Part shown: piece after piece, positions 4,153-18,301 of the stretch
Layout: each line of letters begins with the position of its first letter
Numbering within the stretch: position 1 is the first letter of the stretch
Assembly (NCBI GenBank): GCA_000388065.2
Contig: KB932206.1
Length of the DNA: 18,301 nucleotides
Reading direction: 5' to 3' (one strand)
Origin: Fonticula alba ATCC 38817
Taxonomy: Eukaryota; Protista; Nucleariida
Made by a program: the position numbers and the translations under genes
Notes under the pieces: model-generated
What the model saw: the letters and a program-made list of their open reading frames with translations, nothing else
Told to the model about the DNA's origin: nothing
Database searches by the model: none

Positions 4153-5846
4153 TCAGAGACTGTAGTCCTGGAAGTCATACTGCTCCGCGAGGAGGCGGTA
4201 AACGTAGGATGGGGAGTGATCACCACTGAGGGGGGGGGGAGAGAGAGAGAGCGCTAGGCATGTCAGACAGGGGAGACGAGGCCCGGGAGTCGCGGCAAGG
4301 GGCGGAGGAGGATTTGCGCACTCGTTGGTCACGAAGAGGTTGATCATCTCGGGAGGAACGTAGTCGAACTGGGGGTTGAGGTTCTGCACATCCGGGTGGA
4401 GGTCTGGGGAGTCGCCGCAGGGCTGGCGGTCAGTGATCGGCTGGCCGTGGCCGAAGGGACGGTCCCACGAAAGGGGGGGCGGGGCGGGGAAGAAAAAAAG
4501 GCGCACCATCCTCATAGTTGGCCACATCCGAGGCATTCAGCAGGATGTTCTGGATTTGCGGGTGGAAAGAATACAGGGGGGAAAGGTTGTACAGCCCAGC
4601 CAGGACCACCACCGGGGTTGAGTAGTGGTGGGCCGCCTGGAGGAGGAGGTTCGTGCCGGCCTGAGCGATGATCCCGCCATTGGCCAGGACTGGGGGCAAG
4701 GGGAGAGGGAAGATGCGGGAGACGAGAGACAGCAGGGAGGGCCTATGTTAAGACCCGGGTGAAGGGGGGGGGGGGGGGGCGACGGGCGCAAGACGGCCGG
4801 GGCAGCGTACCAGCATGGGCGCTGATGACAACCTTGTTGACGCGGGCCATCAGGGCAAAGATGGACGTATCATACACGAGGGTGGTGTTGATGTCCTTCT
4901 CGGACAGGCGCTTGGCGGTCTCCTGGGACTCGGCACTGGGCGGGGAAGACAGGGCAGGACCGGGAGGAAGAGGGAGGAGCAACGCGCATGTGTCAGCCAC
5001 GGACCACAAAACATGCAGCCGGGAGTGCCAGTTCGCCAAGGCGATCGATACCTGAAGGTGCTGTCGGCGATGAGGACCTGGAAGGTACGCTTGCGGGCGG
5101 CCTCCAGGAAGAACGCCTCGCAGGTGGGCGACGCGCCGTACGTCATGAGGACCTCATTCATGTGGATGTGCTGGAGGGCCTGGCGAGAAATGTTCTTCTG
5201 GGTGTCGGTCAGATCGTTGATGATGCCGTCGACGATTTCGTGGGCCATGCTGGCAATGGCGTGGTGGCGCTTCTCTGGAAGACCGAGGCACCGGGAGGGG
5301 GGGCAAATCCCAAAAAGACATGAGTCAGCCGGATCATGGCGACAGAGAGATGCATGGAAAGGGCCGCCAGCAAAGGCGGGCCACCGTGGCCAACGCACGC
5401 TTATCCAGGGACAGCTGCTCGGCACCGTCGAAGCTTGACCGCCGGGACACCGCCTGCGACGGGGGCAACGAGGCCGACCCATCATCGAGCAGGGTGAACA
5501 TCGAGTGCGATGGGCGCTCCATGGACGAGTCACACCGGACCGTGTGCAGGAAACGCCGGATAATATTGCCGGAGGAGAGCTCTACAAATAGGTGCCATCA
5601 GCGGGGGCGGGGGGGGGGGGAGGGTGAGGAAGAAGCGGTCTCGAGACCGGGGGCGAATGGGAGTGGCAGGGAGCGGGCGCAAAGCAGGGCCCCGACGAAC
5701 CAAGGGGCTGGGCCACGACAAGGCGCGCGCCGAGGGCCCGAACCAGGTCAATCAGCTGGGGGTAGGAGTCGAAGGTGGAGAAAGAAATGAACTCCCGCAG
5801 CAGGACCGACGTGTGCAGGGCCACAGAGAAGGCGCCGCAGACCTGG
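4153..5846 (-). CDS. EIF2B2: translation initiation factor eIF2B beta subunit (EIF2B2/GCD7 type); N-terminal exon missing, probably in gap 5859-6348
   Basis: Exons (minus) 5846-5701, 5581-5399, 5274-5052, 4935-4811, 4689-4507, 4403-4322, 4225-4153 (TGA); all phases compatible, about 337 aa. Recognised beta-subunit segments: QVCGAFSVALHT, QPLELSSGNIIRR, HIHMNEVLMTYG, FLEAARKRTFQV, IFALMARVNKVVI, VLANGG, FDYVPPEMINLFVTN, HSPSYVYRLLAEQY. Confidence 0.93.
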
Positions 5847-7074: not shown

Positions 7075-8755
7075 ATGTTCCACACCAGCCCGTTTACTGT
7101 GCGTCCTCCGACTTCCGCTTGCTGTGTATGGCGCACCTCCCCAACTGACGGCCGCCCTCTCACCGCCCATGCTCCCCCCTGACGGCCACACAAACACACA
7201 CATGCGCACGCATGCACGCACGCATCCTGGCCCCGATCGTCGGCCCAGATTCGCCAATATGTTATCGATGGGGATATTGACATGATCCGGTCCCTGGCCG
7301 AGACCGGGGCCCTCACGCCAACCTCCCTGCGGAATATCAACCCCGACAACGGCTGGTACGGCCGCCCCCCCCCCCCCCCCCTTCCCTCCCGCCCTGGCCC
7401 TCCCTGCAGGGTGTCCGCCCTTTGCAGCTGTCGTCTCACCTGGTGGCACGTCCATCCAATCTTCGGCCCCCTGCCCTTCCGGTCCCCGAACAGGTCCTCC
7501 CTTCATTATGCCATCTGCTTCGGGCACTTCTCCCTGGTGGAGCTCCTGCTGGAGCAGGGCCACGAGTCGGAGTTTGTCTCGAAGGACATCCAGCTCCGCA
7601 CGCCTCTCATGTTCGCTTGCATGTATGGCTTTCCAGATGTGCGTGCCTCGCCAACCTTGCACCGGTGGCCCCCCTCCCCTGCGGGCATCCCCGCCCCTCC
7701 TGTCTTGCTGCCCGATGGCGGGCGCGCGCGGCCTCTGACATCCCGCCTCTTGGCATCCGCCACTGCCCGTGTGCAGATCTTCAACCTGATCATGAAGTTC
7801 TCCCCGCACTCGCTGTGCATGGTCGATCACTCCGGCCACAATTGCCTTTTCTATGCCGCAATCTACAAGCAGCCGGCGGCCCTGCGGCTGGCCCTATCGA
7901 CGCCCGATCTGAATGCACAGTTGCAAGATCAATCCGGCAACACGGCCCTGCACTATGCCTCATCCCATGGTTTTGTCGAAGTGCGACCCTTGATGCCCCC
8001 CACCCTCCGGACCCGCGCTGCCTGACGAAGCAGGAAAGACACATTCTTTGCATCTTAACCCCCCCCCCCACACACACACATATACACATACACACACCTC
8101 CCGCTCTTGCCCCGGTCACTGTCGCGCCTCCCCACCAAAGGGCGTCGAGCTCCTCATCTCGGCCGGGCTCTCCTTCGACCAGCCGAACCTGCGTGGGTCC
8201 AGCCCGCGCGACTGGTTTGCCTACACCCCGGACCAGGTCTTGGCCGCATTTCCCCACCTGGACTTGCCGCACCTTCGCGGGTTAATCCCCGGCCTGTCTC
8301 CTCCGGCCGGGGGGGAAGAAGGTCGACCGGCCGGCGCGACCAGGCCCGGCAGCATGCCTCGTTCGGCGGGGGGTCCTTCGGCGTCGGGAGCCACCCATCG
8401 CGGGAGCCCTCCAGCCGGATTTCTTAGCCCGACTGCCGCCACCTCCACTGTCACTCCTGCACCCGCTCCCGCCAGCGGGTCTTCTTCTTCCTCCTCCTCC
8501 TCCTCCTCCTCTTCGGGAAGTAAGTTCCGTCAGTTTATTCGCCTTGACAACAGCCTCATTGGCCGGGTTCTTGGGCCCAGCATTGGCGGTACGGCATCCC
8601 TGGCTGGCACTTCACATGCCTCAGCCCCGGGGGCTGGCGGTGGCAGCAGCGGCGGCAGTGGGTCACCCAGCGGCGCCGGAGATCCCCATCGATTGCCGGC
8701 CGAGCCACCAGCCGGAGATCTCCCCGCTGGGACATATGTTTTCCCCAATAAATAA
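7075..8755 (+). CDS. AVO2: ankyrin-repeat protein, Avo2-like (putative TORC2 subunit), 364 aa
   Basis: Exons 7075-7098, 7249-7355, 7494-7638, 7777-7980, 8141-8755 (TAA). Ankyrin repeats: NGWSSLHYAICFGHFSLVELLLEQG, RTPLMFACMYGFPDIFNLIM, HNCLFYAAIY, GNTALHYASSHGFVEGVELLISAG, then an S/G/P-rich tail. NINPDNGWSSLHYA...GHE resembles, from memory, yeast Avo2 NIDSENGWSSLHYA...GHD. The ankyrin call is firm; Avo2 orthology is less certain. Confidence 0.72.
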
Positions 8756-8783
8756 ACCCCATTTCGTGGTGAAGGAAATATGT

Positions 8784-8785
<2 letters not shown>

Positions 8786-8841
<56 letters not shown>
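8786..8841 (+). repeat. (AG)28 microsatellite just downstream of the Avo2-like stop
   Basis: Read directly. Confidence 0.95.
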
Positions 8842-8844
<3 letters not shown>

Positions 8845-8996
8845 CCGCCGTGGTCCATTCAGACAGGCACATGCCGCACGCGCGACCCCTCCCTCGCAGG
8901 GGTGCCCTCTTCTCGCTCGAACCCATGCGCCAAGAGGAGGGGGAACAAGAGGAAGGAAGCGCCGGGGCCCACTCTTGAACTTGAATCTCTTCTGCT

Positions 8997-9027
8997 TTTT
9001 ATTTTGGAGATCTCCATTGAAATAAAA
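8997..9027. terminator. putative bidirectional polyadenylation element between convergent genes 3 and 4
   Basis: AATAAA on + at 9021-9026 and on - at 9003-8998, around the palindrome TGGAGATCTCCA (9005-9016), in an AT-rich island. Function is inferred. Confidence 0.4.
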
Positions 9028-9345
9028 CTACAAAGTGTGGAGGGTGGACAGATACATGGAGAGGAGGGGAGAGAGGACACTCGGGCTGTGTGTGTGTGTG
9101 TGTATGGGGGGGGGGGGGGGGAGATACCCCGCTGGCCCCCTGCAAGGAAAGCAAGTATCAAATGGGGGGAAGAAAAGACGCGGACATTCGCGCGGCATTA
9201 GATGGCCTCTCTCGTGCCGGAGCTCTTGCTCCGGGCAGCTGTGGTGAGAGAGGGGGAGGGGGGAGGGGATGGAGCAGGACGAGGATGAGCGCGAGGGGGA
9301 GGGCGAAATGTACAGACACACAGATACCCACTCGTTTATGCCTGC

Positions 9346-11692
9346 CTAGTTGGCGGCGAGGAGGGAAGGTGCGGGGCCCGCCCCGGCGGCCTTCCCCCCG
9401 GGAGTGATGGTGGTGGTAGTGGTGGTGGTGGTGGTGGTGGTATCAGCAGCGGCAACGGCCGACCGGTGAACCCGATGGATTTGCGCAAAGTACAGGCAGA
9501 GAGCCATGCACACCTCAAAGAGGAGCTCGGCGGCGGCGACGATGTACGTCAGCGGCGTGGTCAAACGCAGGGAGATGAAGATGTCCAGAGCCAGCAGGGG
9601 AAAGGAGAAGCTGTCGGCAAGGGTGATCGGGCATTCGACGATCTCGGCCGGGAAGAAGAAGAGCCGCGCCGGGGCGGGCTTCTGAGACGCCGGCGACAGC
9701 ATCGTGGAGGACGATGCCGACGGATCGGCCGCCAACGACTGGGAGGGACGCCGCGGCGGCAGGGCAACCAACGGAGCAGCTCCCGAGGCCGAGGCCGAGG
9801 CCGAGGCCGCGGGGGCCACCAGCAGCCGGGTCGCCGACGGGGCGCTGGCCGAGGTCACGGCCGCACGAGGCATGCCATGCCGACCCCGAGCCAGGAAGAG
9901 GACGATCGAGCCGACACTCTCCAGGAGCAGGGTGAAAAACACCAAAAACTGGGCCCACGGCGGCAAGGGCAAGGTACAGGCCAGGGCCAGGGACCCATCG
10001 GCCAACAGCGAGCCGGAAACCGAGGCGCCAAAGCGTCTGAGGAAGTACAGATGAATGACCGCCAGCAGCCTCAGGGGGAAGGACACCATGCGAAGAGACC
10101 GGATGGCTGGCCGCAGGGACCCGGAGAAGGTCGACCTGACCGCCAGCAGGCCGGCCGGCAGGAAACGCACGATCGGCCGCGGCGATGAGGGGGCGGCAGC
10201 CGTGGCAATCGAGGCGGCATGGCGGGTGATGGGGACGACGGGGGTGGGCATCCTTTCGGGGGCCTCCTCGTCGTGAGGCGGGCTGGTGATCACCGAGGCA
10301 GCGGCATCGGAAGAAGCCCCACCCGGCAGGACGGATGGACAGGCGGCCAGCACATCGGGGGTGTCGCCGCCATCGACAGGGGTGGCGGTGGCGATGGCGG
10401 TGGCAACAGCGCTGACAGCCACCACCGCCGGGGCAATGCCCGGTGCCTCGCCCGGTGCCTCGCCCGGGCACGGAGGCACGGCAAGTACTGCGACATCACG
10501 CGCCGGGGCACCGGGCATCAGGCTGCCCGCCGCCCGAGACGGGGAGGCAGCCATGGAGACACCGGCGGCCGGGGTCGGCGTCGGCAGGGAACCGGACAGC
10601 TCCTTGGCGGGGGGAGACGCGTGGCCGAGTGCCACGGTTGCTGCCATGGCGGCGCCCTGGTGTTCGACCGGGCGACGCGAGTGAAGCTGCTGATGCAGGA
10701 GATGCCGCTGCATCTTGGCCTGCCGGTGACTCAGGGGCGCATTGCAGGAGGCGGCAGGCGCCGAGATCGTGGCACTCGCTGGCATGCCCGGCGCCGGCGC
10801 CGAGGCAAAGAAGCCCGACCGGGGCGACACGGAGCTGCTGCTGCTGCTGCTGCTGCCGCCGCCGCCACCGCCGCCGCCGCCGCTGGCCAGGGGCGACAGC
10901 TGCGGCGGCGTCAGGCAGAACCCACGCGACGATCCGCCGACAAAAGTAAACCCATCGAGCGGGGAGGTGGTCGAATGGAGGGCCGCCGAGCTGCCAGGAG
11001 CGGCTGCTGCCCCGCCGCCGGAGGCAGCTCGATGGTCACTGGAGGCCACCGGGGAACCGGCCTCAGTCGCTGTCGAGGTGGTCGCCATTAATCCTGCCCC
11101 CGGGCCGCTTCCGTGGAGACGACGAAAAAGGGCATCAACCTGCTGCATGGAGGGCGAAGGGCCGCGAGCCTGCAGGTCCGGCGTCGGCGGCCCGGCCGAC
11201 GCAGGCGCCGCCGATGGGGACAGGGAATGCACCTTGCCGGCGGGCGAGGCCCCCTTGCCCGGCGGCTGGTCAGCCAGGTCCTTGCTGCCGGTGATGGCGC
11301 CACTGGCCGCCGCCAGGAGGGCCCCCTCCGCCGGGGGGAGGCGCTTGATGTACTGGTCAATCCCACTGACCAGCAGCTGCAGCGGGTCCGACATGTCCAG
11401 CGTCGCCGAGGCCGAGGCCGAAGCCGAAACCGAAGCCGAGGCGGTGGCCAGCCCCGCCAAGCCATCAGTCGCGGGTCCAGACGCCGCCATCGCCAGGGAA
11501 GTCGCAGAGCCGGGCCCGGAAGGGGGAGGCGAAGGAGGAGCCGGCGAGGCGGCCTCCCCCTCGGTGGGGCTTGTCAGCATGGTCGTCGGGCTGGTCATCA
11601 GGGAGGTGGGATCGGTGCGCGCCGGCGAGTCGATGGTCGTCGATGACAGGCCGGGGACCGAGTGAAGTGCACGGCCGGGAGCTACTTCGCCC

Positions 11693-11726
<34 letters not shown>

Positions 11727-13074
11727 AGAGGGTGATGATAGACGGAGAGAGGCAGAGGGTCAGCAAGTGAACATGGGGCACACACCCGGACGAAAAAAGA
11801 GCCGAAGGGAGGGGCACACGCACCGGTGCCAGCAGAGGAGGTGGCGACCGAAGGGCTGTCCATTTGCGCCATGACAACGTCCTCGGTGTCGCGGCTGGAG
11901 ATCAACGACAGCAAATACTGGAGGTTGCGGATATTCTGCCCGGAAGGGGAGGCGGAAGAGGTGCCTGGCTGCTGGGGGGCGGCAGCCGGGGACTCATCGG
12001 TCGAAGCAGCGCCAAACATGAGCTGGCCGCCAATGTGCGGGGGCCCGGCGGAGTCAGCGCGCAAAGCCGGCACCGGAGCCGGCGACGACCCGACTGGAGT
12101 GGGGACAGTGCCGGCCGGGGTCGAGGCCGGGGCCAGAGTCCGGAGGATGTCCTGGAACTTGTCCGGCGTCAGGGTCCCGGTGCTGAGGGAGTTCGAGAGG
12201 CTCGACAGCTGCGAGCGAATGCTCATATTGGTGGGGGTGTTGCTGTTGCCGCCGCCGGTGCCGGATGTAGCCGGGCCCGGAGCCGAGCCGCTGGCATTGG
12301 TGGTGGCAAAGGAAAACTGGTCCGGCGAGGGGTCCACCACCATGCGGGACGGCTGGACCGATGGCGACAGTTCGACCGGGAGGCCTGCTGCCAGGACAAC
12401 ACCGGCCCCGGGCCGATGATCGACACCCGATCGAGTGGCAGGACCGGCGAAGGAGGCCCCCTGAGCCGGGCTGCCCTGCTGCTGAGCCTGCTGCTGAGCC
12501 TGCTGCTGAGCCTGCTGGAGAAGTTGCAACGCCTGGATGCTGTCCAGGGGGATCTGCTGGCCGCCGACGTTCAGGGAGGGGCCCATAGCAAGACCGAGCC
12601 CGGGCGGGACAGTCGTCATCCCCCGGGCCAGGGACTCGATGGACATCTTGGTGGCTGACAGAGGATCCGCCTGAGGAGCCTGCATGCCGAGGAGCCCAGA
12701 CGACCCCGTGTAGGGAGACATGCCACCGCCATTGCCGGCGCCAGTGCCGCTGGCGCTACCGACACCATTGCCCGTGCCGGTGGAGCTGATGCTCCCCTGG
12801 TTGATGGTGAAAGTGGCCGACGGAGTGTTGGCCAGGAAGCCGGACTTCAAGGCCGACAGCGAGTCGACCTGCCCCCGCCCGGCCTGCTGCAACAGAGCAT
12901 GCTGCTGCTGCTGCTGGGGCTGACTTAGAAAGGGCTGTCCTCCGGACATTGAGGGCAGAAGTTGGCTAAAGGGCAGCAGCTGAGCGGGATCAGTTGCCGT
13001 CGCGGCCGGCGTTGGCAAGGTCCCCGGTGCCTGGACTCCAGCTTGAAGACGGTCGTTGAGCTGCTGCTGGACCG

Positions 13075-13109
<35 letters not shown>

Positions 13110-14176
13110 GGGGGAGGTGGAGTACATGTGGAAGTGTCAGGAGGGCGCGTGGCTCAATGGTGGGTGGGTGCATGGGAGGGGTGGAGGAAGGGCAGCTCCA
13201 GATGTCGACAAATGGATTGGAGAGGAGGAGAAGGAGGAGAAGGAGGAGGAGAAGGAGGAGGAGAAGGAGGAGGAGAAGGAGGAGGAGGAGGAGGAGGAGG
13301 AGGAAGAGAGGGGAGGCCGTACCAAGCTCGACAGGAGGTTTGTGTTGCCATTGGCCGTGGCCGAGGAGGAGTCGCCCACGCCCAGACGAAGCGCCGCGGA
13401 CACAATCTCCTGAAGGGTGGCCTGCAGCTGCGGCGACAGCGGCTCGGCGGTGGTATTGCCCGAGTGACTGTCAATGGCCTGGGCCAGCGCCCGGAGTGAA
13501 GAAGAAAGATCCTGGTGCGAGGATCCGCCGCCTGCGCATGGCCGTTTCAGGCATGCCAGTCAGTAAAGAAAGCAAACAAAGCAGAGGGAGGCGAGGGGGG
13601 GGAGGGGGGGGGGGGGCCAAGCCAGGGGACGGCAGAAGTGGAAGAGGGGCGGCATTCGTACCAAATGCAGGGCTAGACTCGGTTGGCAGGCCGGTCTTGG
13701 ACACGGGAAGCCCAGTCGAGGCCGCCCCGGGGGTCCCCTGGCCCAGATCGGTTGACAGGGCATGTTGCTGGAAGGAATTATGCACATCGGGCCGGGGGAG
13801 AGTCACGGTGGCCAGAGATGGCAGATTGCCATTGGCGGCCGAGGCGGTGGAGAGGATGTCCATCGATAGATGCTGTCCAAGACCAACCGAGTCGTGGCGG
13901 TCATTGGACGCCGGGAGCTGGGCCTGCTGCTGCTGCTGCTGCTGGGCTTGGAGCTGCTGCTGCTGCTGGGCTTGGAGCTGCTGCTGCTGCTGGGCCTGGA
14001 GCTGCTGCTGAAGCTGCTGGGCCTGGAGCTGCTGGAGCTGCTGCTGGAGCTGCTGCTGGAGCTGGGCCTGCTGCTGCTGGGTCGATTGGGAGGGAGATGC
14101 ATGGAAGGCAGTGCCGGCCATCGGGCTGGTCTGAAGCTGCTGCTGCTGCTGCTGTTGTTGTTGTTGCTGCTGCTGC

Positions 14177-14235
<59 letters not shown>

Positions 14236-14281
14236 AGCAAGTTGCTGAAGGAGAAGCTGCTGCTGCTGCTGCATTAGAAGT

Positions 14282-14347
<66 letters not shown>

Positions 14348-14368
14348 GGCTGCTGCTGCTGCTGCTGG

Positions 14369-14401
<33 letters not shown>

Positions 14402-14404
14402 GAC

Positions 14405-14453
<49 letters not shown>

Positions 14454-15656
14454 GCTGCTGTTGAGCCTGAAGGTGCTGCTGGACCTTCTGCTGGTGCAGT
14501 TGGGCCTGCTGATGCTGCGCCTGCTGCCGCTGAGCCTGCTTCTGAACCTGCTGCTGGAGCCGCACGAGGAGATGGGAAGTGTTCTTCATCAGCGGCGATC
14601 CCTGCGTAGGTAGGGCGAGCATGGGCGAGATGCCGGTTCGGGAGAAGTCGGTGGCGGCCGCAGCGGCAGCCGCCGCCGCCGCCGCCGCAGCCGCCTGCGG
14701 CAGATCCTGCAGAGGAGTGCCCGACCCCGAGGCATTGAGGTGTGCGGAGGAGGCCAGCAATGAGGCAAAGATCGCCGACGCGTGATTGACCGGCATCGAG
14801 GCGCTCAGCGTTCCCGGCGGAACCGGGACGGAGATGCTGCGCGATGAGCGTGCCGCAGCGGACATCATCCGGTTGGCCTTCATGGCGCCAGGGTAGCGCG
14901 GAGGCGTGAAGGCCGCGGTGCCGGCTGGCCGAAGCGCAACAGGAGCCCCCCGCCGAGAAGAGGGAAGGGTGAGTTGTGTTGGCATTACCGCCTTCAGGGG
15001 GAAAGGGGCGAGAGGAGAAAGATCGGGATGCGAGGCACGGAGCAGCGAAACATACAGGAACCAAGGTTGCCGCCGGCGCCGGCGCCGGAGGACGCCGAGG
15101 AGGAAGCCGCGGCCGAGGAGGTGGTGGAGGCACCACTGCCGATGACATTGGCCAGGGCCGTGTCACCGGACACAAGGGCCAGGTCGGTCACCTGGCCCGG
15201 GTCGGTCCAGGAGCCGTGATGGTTCTTCTTGCGGAAGTGCATGAGCAGGGCCTGGCGACGGCTGACGCGCGCACCACAGGCATTGCACTGGTAACGCTTG
15301 TAGTGGTGGTGCCGGACCATGTGAGACTCGTACTTGTAGAAGGAGTCGAAGCTCTCATTGCACAATAGCCCGGACGAGGGCTCGACCCACTGCGAGTGGA
15401 CAGGGAACAACCGGTCGTGAGGTCAGACTGAGAGGCGCGCGGGAGGCCGGGGCAGGGAGCATCGAGGAAGGGGGGAAGGGGGGAGGGGGGGGGGGGACGC
15501 ACATAGCAGACCTTGACACCGCGACCGCGCTGGAAAATGTCGTGCTGGAGCGTCATATGGCGAAAAAGCTGGCCAGCAGAAAAAGGGGGGGGGGAGGGGA
15601 ACAACAACGAGGGGGCGCGGTCAGAGGACGTGGACGTGATATATGGCCCGGGGCGG

Positions 15657-15695
<39 letters not shown>

Positions 15696-15968
15696 CCATA
15701 CCTCGAAGGACGAAGGGAAGGACACGCCGCAGGGCGAGGGGATGATGGGTTTGGCGTCGGTCGAGGTGTCGTCCTCGGTCGACTGGTCGGCCGACTGCGA
15801 GAAGGAATGCATATAGCACACATGGTTCGACGCGAAGGAGGAGTGCGGCTGCGGGGACTGCGAGGGCGAAGACTGGGGCGAGGTCGAGGGCTGGCCGCTG
15901 CCCGAGGCGGGGGACAGGACACTTGGCCGGCCGGCTCGTGGCGAGAAGGCCGACTCCACAGGGAGGCT
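9346..15968 (-). CDS. large C2H2 zinc-finger protein with polyQ/low-complexity region and C-terminal hydrophobic (putative transmembrane) helices; 5'-partial
   Basis: Exons (minus) >=15968-15702, 15568-15503, 15389-15056, 14924-13662, 13531-13323, 13105-11824, 11681-9346 (TAG); phases 0/0/1/1/0/1 compatible, no stops, at least 1918 aa. Fingers: C-x28-C-x12-H-x4-H, C-x10-C-x12-H-x3-H, C-x2-C-x12-H-x5-H. The start lies in or beyond gap 15970-16715. Confidence 0.75.
9405..9441 (-). repeat. (ACC)n coding repeat, poly-Thr near the C-terminus of gene 4
   Basis: + strand (GGT)n run; translates as DTTTTTTTTTTIT. Confidence 0.85.
9481..10089 (-). other. four hydrophobic helices (putative membrane domain) of gene 4
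   Basis: Segments 10089-10039 (MVSFPLRLLAVIHLYFL), 9960-9886 (PWAQFLVFFTLLLESVGSIVLFLAR), 9609-9562 (FSFPLLALDIFISLRL), 9555-9481 (PLTYIVAAAELLFEVCMALCLYFAQ), judged by eye; no predictor was run. Confidence 0.6.
11693..11717 (+). repeat. (GA)n microsatellite, i.e. the (CT)n pyrimidine tract of gene 4 last intron
   Basis: Read directly; sits just before the acceptor at 11682-11687 in minus sense. Confidence 0.9.
13076..13108 (-). repeat. (CAG)11 spanning an intron/exon boundary of gene 4
   Basis: + strand (CTG)11; the first CAG is the splice acceptor and the rest encode Q10. Confidence 0.85.
13221..13310 (+). repeat. intronic polypurine GAG/AAG repeat (12-nt period, then (GAG)n)
   Basis: Read directly; inside intron 13322-13106. 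Confidence 0.9.
13922..14556 (-). repeat. CAG/CAA polyglutamine-coding region, including an uninterrupted Q33 (14235-14137) and about three 24-nt LQAQQQQQ units (~13942-14013)
   Basis: + strand CTG/TTG runs, in frame with exon 14924-13662. Confidence 0.93.
15219..15811 (-). other. three-finger C2H2 domain of gene 4, split by two phase-0 introns
   Basis: Spliced peptide HVCYMH...PSPCGVSFPSSFE|LFRHMTLQH...KVCY|WVEPSSGLLCNESFDSFYKYESHMVRH..YQCNACGARVSRRQALLMHFRKKNH. The 12-residue Cys-to-His spacing in fingers 1 and 2 is only restored by the proposed splices. Boundaries approximate. Confidence 0.82.
15661..15693 (+). repeat. (CAG)11 on +, i.e. intronic (CUG)11 in gene 4 pre-mRNA
   Basis: Read directly; begins a few nt after the donor at 15701. 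Confidence 0.92.
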
Positions 15969-15969
15969 G

Positions 15970-16715
15970 NNNNNNNNNNNNNNNNNNNNNNNNNNNNNNN
16001 NNNNNNNNNNNNNNNNNNNNNNNNNNNNNNNNNNNNNNNNNNNNNNNNNNNNNNNNNNNNNNNNNNNNNNNNNNNNNNNNNNNNNNNNNNNNNNNNNNNN
16101 NNNNNNNNNNNNNNNNNNNNNNNNNNNNNNNNNNNNNNNNNNNNNNNNNNNNNNNNNNNNNNNNNNNNNNNNNNNNNNNNNNNNNNNNNNNNNNNNNNNN
16201 NNNNNNNNNNNNNNNNNNNNNNNNNNNNNNNNNNNNNNNNNNNNNNNNNNNNNNNNNNNNNNNNNNNNNNNNNNNNNNNNNNNNNNNNNNNNNNNNNNNN
16301 NNNNNNNNNNNNNNNNNNNNNNNNNNNNNNNNNNNNNNNNNNNNNNNNNNNNNNNNNNNNNNNNNNNNNNNNNNNNNNNNNNNNNNNNNNNNNNNNNNNN
16401 NNNNNNNNNNNNNNNNNNNNNNNNNNNNNNNNNNNNNNNNNNNNNNNNNNNNNNNNNNNNNNNNNNNNNNNNNNNNNNNNNNNNNNNNNNNNNNNNNNNN
16501 NNNNNNNNNNNNNNNNNNNNNNNNNNNNNNNNNNNNNNNNNNNNNNNNNNNNNNNNNNNNNNNNNNNNNNNNNNNNNNNNNNNNNNNNNNNNNNNNNNNN
16601 NNNNNNNNNNNNNNNNNNNNNNNNNNNNNNNNNNNNNNNNNNNNNNNNNNNNNNNNNNNNNNNNNNNNNNNNNNNNNNNNNNNNNNNNNNNNNNNNNNNN
16701 NNNNNNNNNNNNNNN
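15970..16715. other. assembly gap hiding the 5' part of gene 4
   Basis: Run of N; the coding frame is open up to the gap edge. Confidence 0.95.
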
Positions 16716-16879
16716 TTCGTTCGCCTGTGGGCCAGGCCTCCGCCCCCCCCCCCCCGCTCTCCCGCTCTCCCCGCTTGGCCCGCACCTCCAGGCGCGGCCG
16801 CCCCGTCCGTGTGAGGGCAGGGGAAGCCGGGGGAGTGCCTCGCCACTCTTGCGCCCGGTCGGCCCGGCGGCTGGCATGC

Positions 16880-16880
16880 T

Positions 16881-16915
<35 letters not shown>
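16880..16915 (+). repeat. (GCTG)n tetranucleotide repeat
   Basis: Read directly: gctggctggctggctg... Confidence 0.9.
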
Positions 16916-16918
<3 letters not shown>

Positions 16919-17836
16919 TGGACCGGGGAGTCTGACCCGGAAGGGGGAGGGGGGCTTGCCATTTCCTGCGGTCGGTTCCCAACCCCCTGCCCAACACCCC
17001 CCAACCAAGGTTGCCAGCCGGGCCGTCCCAGCCCGGGCGCTCGCCGCCCCCCCGGGCCGCATCCGGGCAAGCAGGCCAACCAGCCCACTCAGGAAGGGCA
17101 GAGGGAAGCCGCGCCCGGCAGGGCTGGCACACCACCCCGTGTGCACCTGACGGAGCAAGTGAGGGAGCGGGGGGGGGTGTTGGCCCGGGCGAAATCGCCG
17201 CGCCCCGGCGCCCGGGGGCCGCATCGAGGCGATGGGGGGTGGGCGCACGGCCATCGAAGCGCGCCGCCCCGCCCGGGCTGGGCGTTTCCTCACCCGCCTG
17301 GCCGGACTCGGAGCCTGCCGGTCCCCCGGGTGGCCTGAGGTGTCGAATCATATTGGAAGATGAAACAACATCCCTCATAGGCGCAGGGGCCCTCTGCGGG
17401 CGGACGCGCGCGCGCGCTCGCGCCCACCTGAGAGCCCTCCTTGGGCGGAAGAGGATGGTGGATTTCCCGGTCCCCTGCCCATCACCCAACCCGGTCGGGG
17501 TCGGCGTGAGCGCGAGCGATGGGGCGCCGCGCCGGGGGGGGGGGGGAGAGGCGGGCGCGGAACGCGGGAAACGCGGGAAGGCCCGGCCGCCGGCGCCGGC
17601 GGTCTAGGGCCGGGCGCGCCTCCGGCGCCGGCGCCCCGGGCACTGACCTCCCAACACACAGGGGCCCACGCTCGGCGGGGGGGGGGGGAGGGCATTTTTG
17701 TGTGCCTCCTCCCGGGGTGTTTCCTCCATCGGCCGCCGGTCGCCATTGACCCGGCGCCTCGGCCGCCGGAGGGCCGCCAATGGGCCAGCACAAATGCGTC
17801 CAGACCGCGCGCGCGCGCCTGGGCTCCAGAATACTG

Positions 17837-17978
17837 GGAAAGGGCCTTCCGACGAATTAATAAGACCCTGCCCTCGCGGGCTCCCGGTCCCCCCCCCCCC
17901 CGTTGCGGAAAGGGCCTTCCGACGAATTAATAAGACCCTGCCCTCGCGGGCTCCCGGTCCCCCCCCCCCCCGTTGCGG
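17837..17978 (+). repeat. exact 70-bp tandem duplication (2 copies)
   Basis: GGAAAGGGCCTTCCGACGAATTAATAAGACCCTGCCCTCGCGGGCTCCCGGT-C13-GTTGC at 17837-17906 and 17907-17976, followed by GG. Confidence 0.92.
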
Positions 17979-18264
17979 TTGCCGCGCCGCTGCCGCCGGC
18001 TCCACACCCTACCAGCGGCGAGCCCAAGCGGGGGGGGGGGACGAGGGGTACACGCCGTGAGCCAAGCCAGCGGAGAGCCCAGCCCCGCCCCCGTCCGCTC
18101 CGGGGGGCCCAATATCCTGCAAATGAGCGAGCCGTGAGGGCAGCTGGGGTCTTTCTCGCGCCCGCCGCCCTTCCCGAGCCCGGGGCGCAGCCATTGGCCG
18201 GTGGCGCGCCGGCGCGGACCGGGAGCCCGTGAAAAAGGCGGCCGCGGGCCTGCGCCAGCCGCGC

Positions 18265-18267
<3 letters not shown>

Positions 18268-18301
<34 letters not shown>
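18268..18301 (+). repeat. poly-C run at window end
   Basis: Read directly. Confidence 0.9.

Follow-up and report, generated by a model that had tools for sequence, protein, structure and literature searches.

We analysed a stretch of 18,301 nucleotides (nt) from the slime mould Fonticula alba ATCC 38817 (GenBank assembly GCA_000388065.2, contig KB932206.1), which we call the window. The window is eukaryotic nuclear DNA and not human, rich in G+C (GC content ~0.65) and broken by five N gaps. Its minus strand carries, from 15968 down to a TAG stop at 9346-9348, a predicted gene for a very large protein with three C2H2 zinc fingers at its N-terminal end, a long Q-rich and S/A/G/P-rich body, and a hydrophobic tail. 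The DNA does contain the exon chain with its open frames, as well as the fingers and hydrophobic segments that it encodes. Our best single reading of them, which we hold tentatively and from the sequence, is that the locus would make one product, a membrane-anchored C2H2 protein. An assembly gap of 746 N at 15970-16715 removes the 5' end of the gene, and the start codon and any extra N-terminal domain probably fall within it.

We rebuilt the exon chain from the minus-strand sequence and used a script to check it for stops. The predicted chain, exons 1 to 7 from 15968 to 9349, runs for 1919 codons without a stop, or 1918 if the TAG acceptor of the last intron is used. Exon 1 (15702-15968, partial, 89 codons) has both cysteines of finger 1, with Cys codons at 15818 and 15731. 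Exon 2 (15503-15568, 22 codons) adds the two finger-1 histidines and begins finger 2 with its first cysteine (C-Y, the W coming at the start of exon 3); a GTGCGT donor comes next, at 15502. The remainder of finger 2 (to 15309), a canonical finger 3 (15287-15219) and an S/A-rich tail make up exon 3 (15056-15389). Exon 4 (13662-14924) encodes the Q-rich region; its CAG-rich tracts lie at about 14451-13924. Exon 5 (13323-13531, ~70 codons) is not low-complexity and resembles a short helical segment. Exon 6 (11824-13105, 427 codons) is Q/S/A/G/P-rich, its frame is strongly supported, and it ends at a second GTGCGT donor, at 11823. Intron 6 (11685-11823) is CT-rich with an AAG/TAG acceptor, and it is the critical junction of the model. 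Beyond it, exon 7 (9349-11684, or 11681; ~778 codons) encodes about 500 S/A/G/P-rich amino acids and then a hydrophobic stretch that takes up the last 260.

The introns are alike. All six are GT..AG introns of 113-217 nt that start with GT[A/G][C/T]G (a GTRYGN donor), and five of the six acceptors are CAG. Their C+T content is 0.67-0.82, compared with 0.51-0.63 in the exons. A preliminary description of this DNA had proposed six consensus introns joined in one stop-free frame of at least 1918 amino acids, and the rebuilt chain bears this out.

We looked for coding signal in the frames as well. The frames of exons 1, 3, 4 and 6 and of the hydrophobic C-terminus are backed by GC at third codon positions (GC3) and by synonymous-codon profiles. 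In the hydrophobic region GC3 is 0.80-0.88, compared with 0.38-0.5 at second positions (GC2), and the frame is the same as that of the preceding 500 amino acids. The synonymous-codon score, for which three HSP70-family genes of F. alba were the training set, agrees with the proposed frames for most of the locus. In several A/S/T/P-rich stretches the score favours another frame, and we rejected that frame as an artefact because its third position coincides with the second position of A/S/T/P codons, where C is invariant; it also has stops. The open frame that contains exon 7 is 843 codons long. At 72% GC a random codon is a stop in about 1.7% of cases, and by simple arithmetic 777 stop-free codons would arise by chance with P ~2e-6. 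Intron 5 holds a long (TCC/CTC)n tract at 13135-13320 that is open in several frames, so open frames alone are weak evidence in the F. alba genome.

Three other ways of reading the locus were tried and set aside. The CAG tract can be read as poly-alanine (polyA), but GCA never encodes Ala in the training genes and the polyA frame stops at 13901. An alternative acceptor for intron 3 at 14992 opens into that same rejected frame. For exon 2 there is another donor at 15511 (GTCTGC); we preferred the GTGCGT at 15502 because it fits the pattern of the other donors and provides finger 2 with its first cysteine.

For the protein itself, Pfam and homology searches were run on single exons, and the concatenated chain was used for the stop count only. 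Finger 3 reads C-x2-C, x12, H-x5-H and fits the classical pattern C-x2-4-C-x3-F-x5-L-x2-H-x3-5-H (PF00096 clan). Fingers 1 and 2 preserve the x12 spacing together with the histidines and the hydrophobic core positions, and depart from the classical spacing of 2-4 residues between the cysteines, with loops of 28 and 10 residues respectively. Finger 1 is interrupted by intron 1; it reads C-x28-C-x12-H-x4-H and retains its core Phe and Leu. Finger 2 starts with C-Y-W, has a loop of ten residues between its cysteines and goes on with x12-H-x3-H; it requires its first cysteine from exon 2 and works only with the donor at 15502. The two are separated by an 11-residue linker. Exon 3 alone scored below the Pfam cut-offs, with 24.9 bits for zf-C2H2_4 (cut-off 27) and 18.6 bits for zf-C2H2 (cut-off 25.2). 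The same exon, which carries finger 3 and most of finger 2, matched many solved C2H2 chains in the PDB with phmmer, at E-values of 2e-7 to 1e-5. Of the three N-terminal fingers first described, fingers 2 and 3 have sub-threshold Pfam scores and PDB matches down to 2e-7, and finger 1 was checked by pattern.

The body is what had been described. Exon 4 has 163 Q in 420 amino acids, and in the 206 amino acids that end at 13924 the share of Q is 73%. An S/A/G/P-rich composition extends through exon 6 and over the first 520 residues of exon 7. The body carries a few short non-repetitive helical motifs, as read from the sequence, and these may be of the kind often present in activation regions.

The tail was described as four hydrophobic helices, and two of the four hold up as potential membrane spans. 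We scored it with a 19-residue Kyte-Doolittle window (KD19) and a threshold of 1.6, and with a crude Hessa-scale insertion sum; both measures were calibrated on the rhomboid, SPP-type protease and HSP70 proteins of F. alba itself. Among the true spans of the rhomboid and SPP proteins, the strong ones have values of 2.1-2.9 and the weak ones 1.3-1.6, and soluble HSP70s reach up to 1.55. Only the second and fourth helices of the tail, h2 and h4, exceed 1.6. Helix h2 (9889-9957, 23 amino acids with one Glu) has a KD19 of 2.36, a crude insertion sum of -0.5 and a basic R-G-R-H flank after it. Helix h4 (9478-9552, 25 amino acids with two Glu) has a KD of 2.08, a marginal crude insertion sum of +2.1 and a basic H-R-V-H-R flank. 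By these scores h2 and h4 would clearly be of transmembrane-grade hydrophobicity. The other two fall below that grade. Both h1 (10039-10089, 17 amino acids with R and H) and h3 (9562-9609, 16 amino acids with D and R) have a KD19 of 1.53 and a crude insertion sum above +5, and they appear ambiguous as membrane spans, since their scores lie in the range that weak true spans share with soluble segments. Hydrophobic moments are low for all four helices, so they have no polar face. When we compared one helix pair with the other by BLAST, we found no internal repeat. AlphaFold, given the tail as a single sequence, placed a helix at all four sites with low confidence.

The order of head, body and hydrophobic cluster on one predicted product holds in silico. 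We infer that all of the parts lie on one messenger RNA (mRNA), that the helices are inserted in a membrane, and that both ends of the protein are on the same side of it (N-in/C-in). A single F. alba gene would then encode an orphan protein of more than 1900 amino acids. Its head would have two fingers whose long Cys-Cys loops are "CWCH2-like", as in Zic/PacC, and then one canonical finger, and its body would be about 1500 disordered amino acids, Q-rich and S/A/G/P-rich, with scattered short helical motifs. The hydrophobic cluster of about 230 amino acids would most likely anchor the protein in the membrane of the endoplasmic reticulum (ER) or the nuclear envelope, with the fingers facing the cytosolic or nucleoplasmic side. 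The anchor may be made of one or two hairpins formed by two to four helices. The basic flanks that follow h2 and h4 are consistent with an N-in/C-in topology, and would be cytosolic if there are four spans.

Several results weigh against a single membrane-anchored product, and the first of them concern the gene model. It may be an artefact in which intron 6 is retained, in which there are two tandem minus-strand units, or in which the 3' end is a different one; we think this somewhat unlikely. The exon-6 frame is open across intron 6 until a stop at 11465, and with the intron retained the hydrophobic tail would be off the zinc-finger product. The acceptor of intron 6 is AAG/TAG instead of the CAG of the other five introns, and open frames of 300 amino acids occur in many frames of the GC-rich DNA here. 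Public annotation is a further point. We searched the last 294 amino acids against 1.84 billion representative proteins with HMMER and obtained 0 matches, the protein itself included. The same F. alba assembly has an intronless HSP70 gene whose product (XP_009495687.1) is in the parent public collection, so a product with this C-terminus is apparently missing from the public protein set. Neither exon 6 nor exon 7 is covered by an annotated product of 235-1360 amino acids. With exon 7 and exon 6 as queries, word searches gave nothing among products of 0.55-1.75 times the query length, which puts products of more than 1360 and more than 747 residues outside the search, so a product of about 1900 amino acids would be missed.

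Other features of the locus argue for an intact gene. The donor of intron 6, GTGCGT, is the same as that of intron 2, and its (CT)n body is like those of the other introns. The exon-6-frame codon signal that continues past 11680 is explained by the second-position C of A/S/T/P codons in the exon-7 frame. An open frame of 843 codons with GC3 periodicity is not an untranslated region (UTR). GC content shows no intergenic-looking dip from 15000 to 9500, and no stretch like the intergenic 8760-9345 or 16716-18301 is found inside the locus. An ankyrin-repeat gene on the plus strand (7282-8022) converges on the 3' end of our gene, and since the downstream neighbour is convergent, the tail cannot be part of a downstream minus-strand gene. 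We favour one product because intron 6 resembles the others in its donor and CT-rich body, there is no intergenic stretch, a periodic frame of 2 kb is implausible as a UTR, and the neighbour is convergent.

The second alternative accepts one gene and makes its product a soluble nuclear C2H2 factor, with the helices forming a small hydrophobic domain such as an oligomerisation or partner-binding bundle. In silico, about 4% of plant transcription factors are called "membrane-bound", and very few of these have been verified (PMC5694209). In our tail every helix has charged residues (one or two each), h1 and h3 do not outscore soluble HSP70 segments, and the crude insertion sum is favourable in one helix only. 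On the other hand, no segment of three soluble F. alba chaperones scores as high as h2 or h4. About 75% of the helix residues are apolar and the hydrophobic moments are low, unlike the amphipathic helices of soluble bundles, and basic residues lie beside h2 and h4 on the side predicted to be cytosolic. We consider a soluble factor rather unlikely.

The lack of relatives counts against an anchored protein too, as does the poor fold prediction for the tail, which has a mean pLDDT (predicted local distance difference test) of 47 and no confident fold. No look-alike of the tail was found in the ESM Atlas, and in a search of its own genome the tail matched only itself, with no paralogue. Pfam on five exons gave nothing but the sub-threshold C2H2 matches in exon 3 and no family for the tail.

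We divide the anchored reading about equally between a releasable latent factor and a permanent tether. Within it, a permanent resident of the inner nuclear membrane or ER that holds DNA or RNA at the membrane with its fingers, like Heh1, Lem2 or Bqt4, and is never released, seems unlikely. A very long disordered linker does separate the nucleic-acid-binding head from the C-terminal hydrophobic helices, a layout known for inner-nuclear-membrane proteins, and Pfam on single exons identified no protease site or sensing domain, but the polyQ tracts and short helical motifs would be typical of activation regions, and LEM/HeH, APSES and MSC domains were not found in the same single-exon searches.

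For the membrane-anchored C2H2 protein that we prefer, the likeliest role once anchored would be that of a latent transcription factor released by proteolysis, as with SREBP, ATF6 and Mga2. That such release takes place is a guess on our part, and a quite unlikely one. The F. alba genome encodes rhomboids and SPP-type proteases, and its S2P-like match is weak; release machinery for this protein is conceivable. The fullest version of the idea, in which this would be the first truly membrane-tethered C2H2 factor, Fonticula-specific and missing from the annotation, with a four-helix (double-hairpin) anchor and proteolytic release, is improbable.

Membrane-bound transcription factors are a known kind, and include SREBP, ATF6, NAC factors, Spt23/Mga2 and MYRF; the domains that define them did not turn up in our exons with Pfam. 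SREBP/Sre1 and ATF6 resemble our protein in that the DNA-binding domain is N-terminal and hydrophobic helices lie further toward the C-terminus. A hairpin that leaves both ends cytosolic may be possible in our protein too, and the intramembrane proteases encoded in the F. alba genome would be a shared setting. They differ in using a bHLH-zip or bZIP domain where our protein has C2H2 fingers. In the studied exons Pfam found no HLH, SCAP-binding or luminal sensing domain at E-values up to 1, the anchor may have four helices, and we found no sequence relationship. Spt23/Mga2 and MYRF are similar as large latent factors with a C-terminal helix anchor, and they are released by the proteasome or by self-cleavage. 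Their IPT/TIG, ankyrin, Ndt80 and peptidase S74 domains were not detected by Pfam in the studied exons.

The fingers invite comparison with another group. PacC is activated by removing its C-terminal part, and differs from our protein in having no membrane helices. PacC/Rim101, Zic, Gli and Zap1 share with it a three-finger N-terminus in which the first two fingers are atypical, and finger 2 has the C-x-W. The marks of the tandem-CWCH2 class, to which Zic, Gli, PacC and Zap1 belong, are long Cys-Cys loops, a long linker between the fingers and a Trp after the first cysteine (PMC2837044). Fingers 1 and 2 have the extra sequence between the cysteines and the longer linker. Finger 1 has C-Y-M, with Met in place of the class-defining Trp that should be present in both fingers, so we did not assign the module to the tandem-CWCH2 class. 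Structures of GLI, ZIC and Zap1 are absent among the best 60 PDB matches of exon 3.

The preliminary description did not recognise a membrane version with C2H2 fingers and four helices. In the literature that we searched, we found no C2H2 factor shown experimentally to be membrane-tethered or with demonstrated release. An in silico survey of 14 plant species does list 70 C2H2 factors with predicted transmembrane segments (PMC5694209). These are like our protein in combining C2H2 fingers with predicted spans, and like it they are known from sequence only. The difference lies in the number of spans: across all families in that survey, 71.5% of the predicted membrane-bound factors have one span and 21.1% have two (PMC5694209). 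Homology between the plant proteins and ours is not evidenced.

If an anchored C2H2 factor is indeed made here, the commonest eukaryotic DNA-binding fold would join the bHLH, bZIP, NAC, IPT and Ndt80 domains of the experimentally known membrane-tethered factors. The case would lie in a sister lineage of the fungi with independently evolved aggregative multicellularity, and a large gene would be missing from the F. alba reference annotation. At present it stands as a hypothesis drawn from sequence about an orphan protein, and its value is that of a well-defined and cheap test case.

Two other F. alba loci deserve mention. Another long low-complexity frame (L002, G000:C2:3453474-3456650, minus strand; 1468 amino acids open) has a finger that reads C-K-W-G-D-C. 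This finger looks more Gli/PacC-like than those studied here, and L002 is a candidate for a PacC/Gli-class gene; Pfam found nothing in the 408-amino-acid piece that was scanned. The second (L013, G000:C1:2762496-2767265) is an Hsp110/Grp170-like frame with a strongly hydrophobic segment upstream of its HSP70 match, which is possibly the signal peptide of an ER-resident form.

The rest of the window has a PP2C phosphatase gene on the plus strand (1665-2990, 80 bits) and a minus-strand gene for an eIF2B-family subunit (4153-5533) that is interrupted by introns and a gap. The 1.6 kb past the gap at the 5' end of our gene (16716-18301) appears to be non-coding. Within it, two near-identical copies of a unit of about 60 nt stand in tandem at 17850-17985 (read on the minus strand), each with a G-run and then 'accgggagcccgcgagggcagggtcttattaattcgtcgg...'; they could represent a promoter element or a duplication introduced in assembly. 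In the region that precedes the gap, an (AGCC)n microsatellite at 16878-16925 lies directly upstream of an ATG, and this may be either 5' UTR or a first coding exon. Long homopolymer G/C runs at 18268-18301, 690-875 and 1665-1700 flank N gaps and the end of the window. In lists of open reading frames they translate as poly-Gly or poly-Pro, and they probably cause the assembly breaks.

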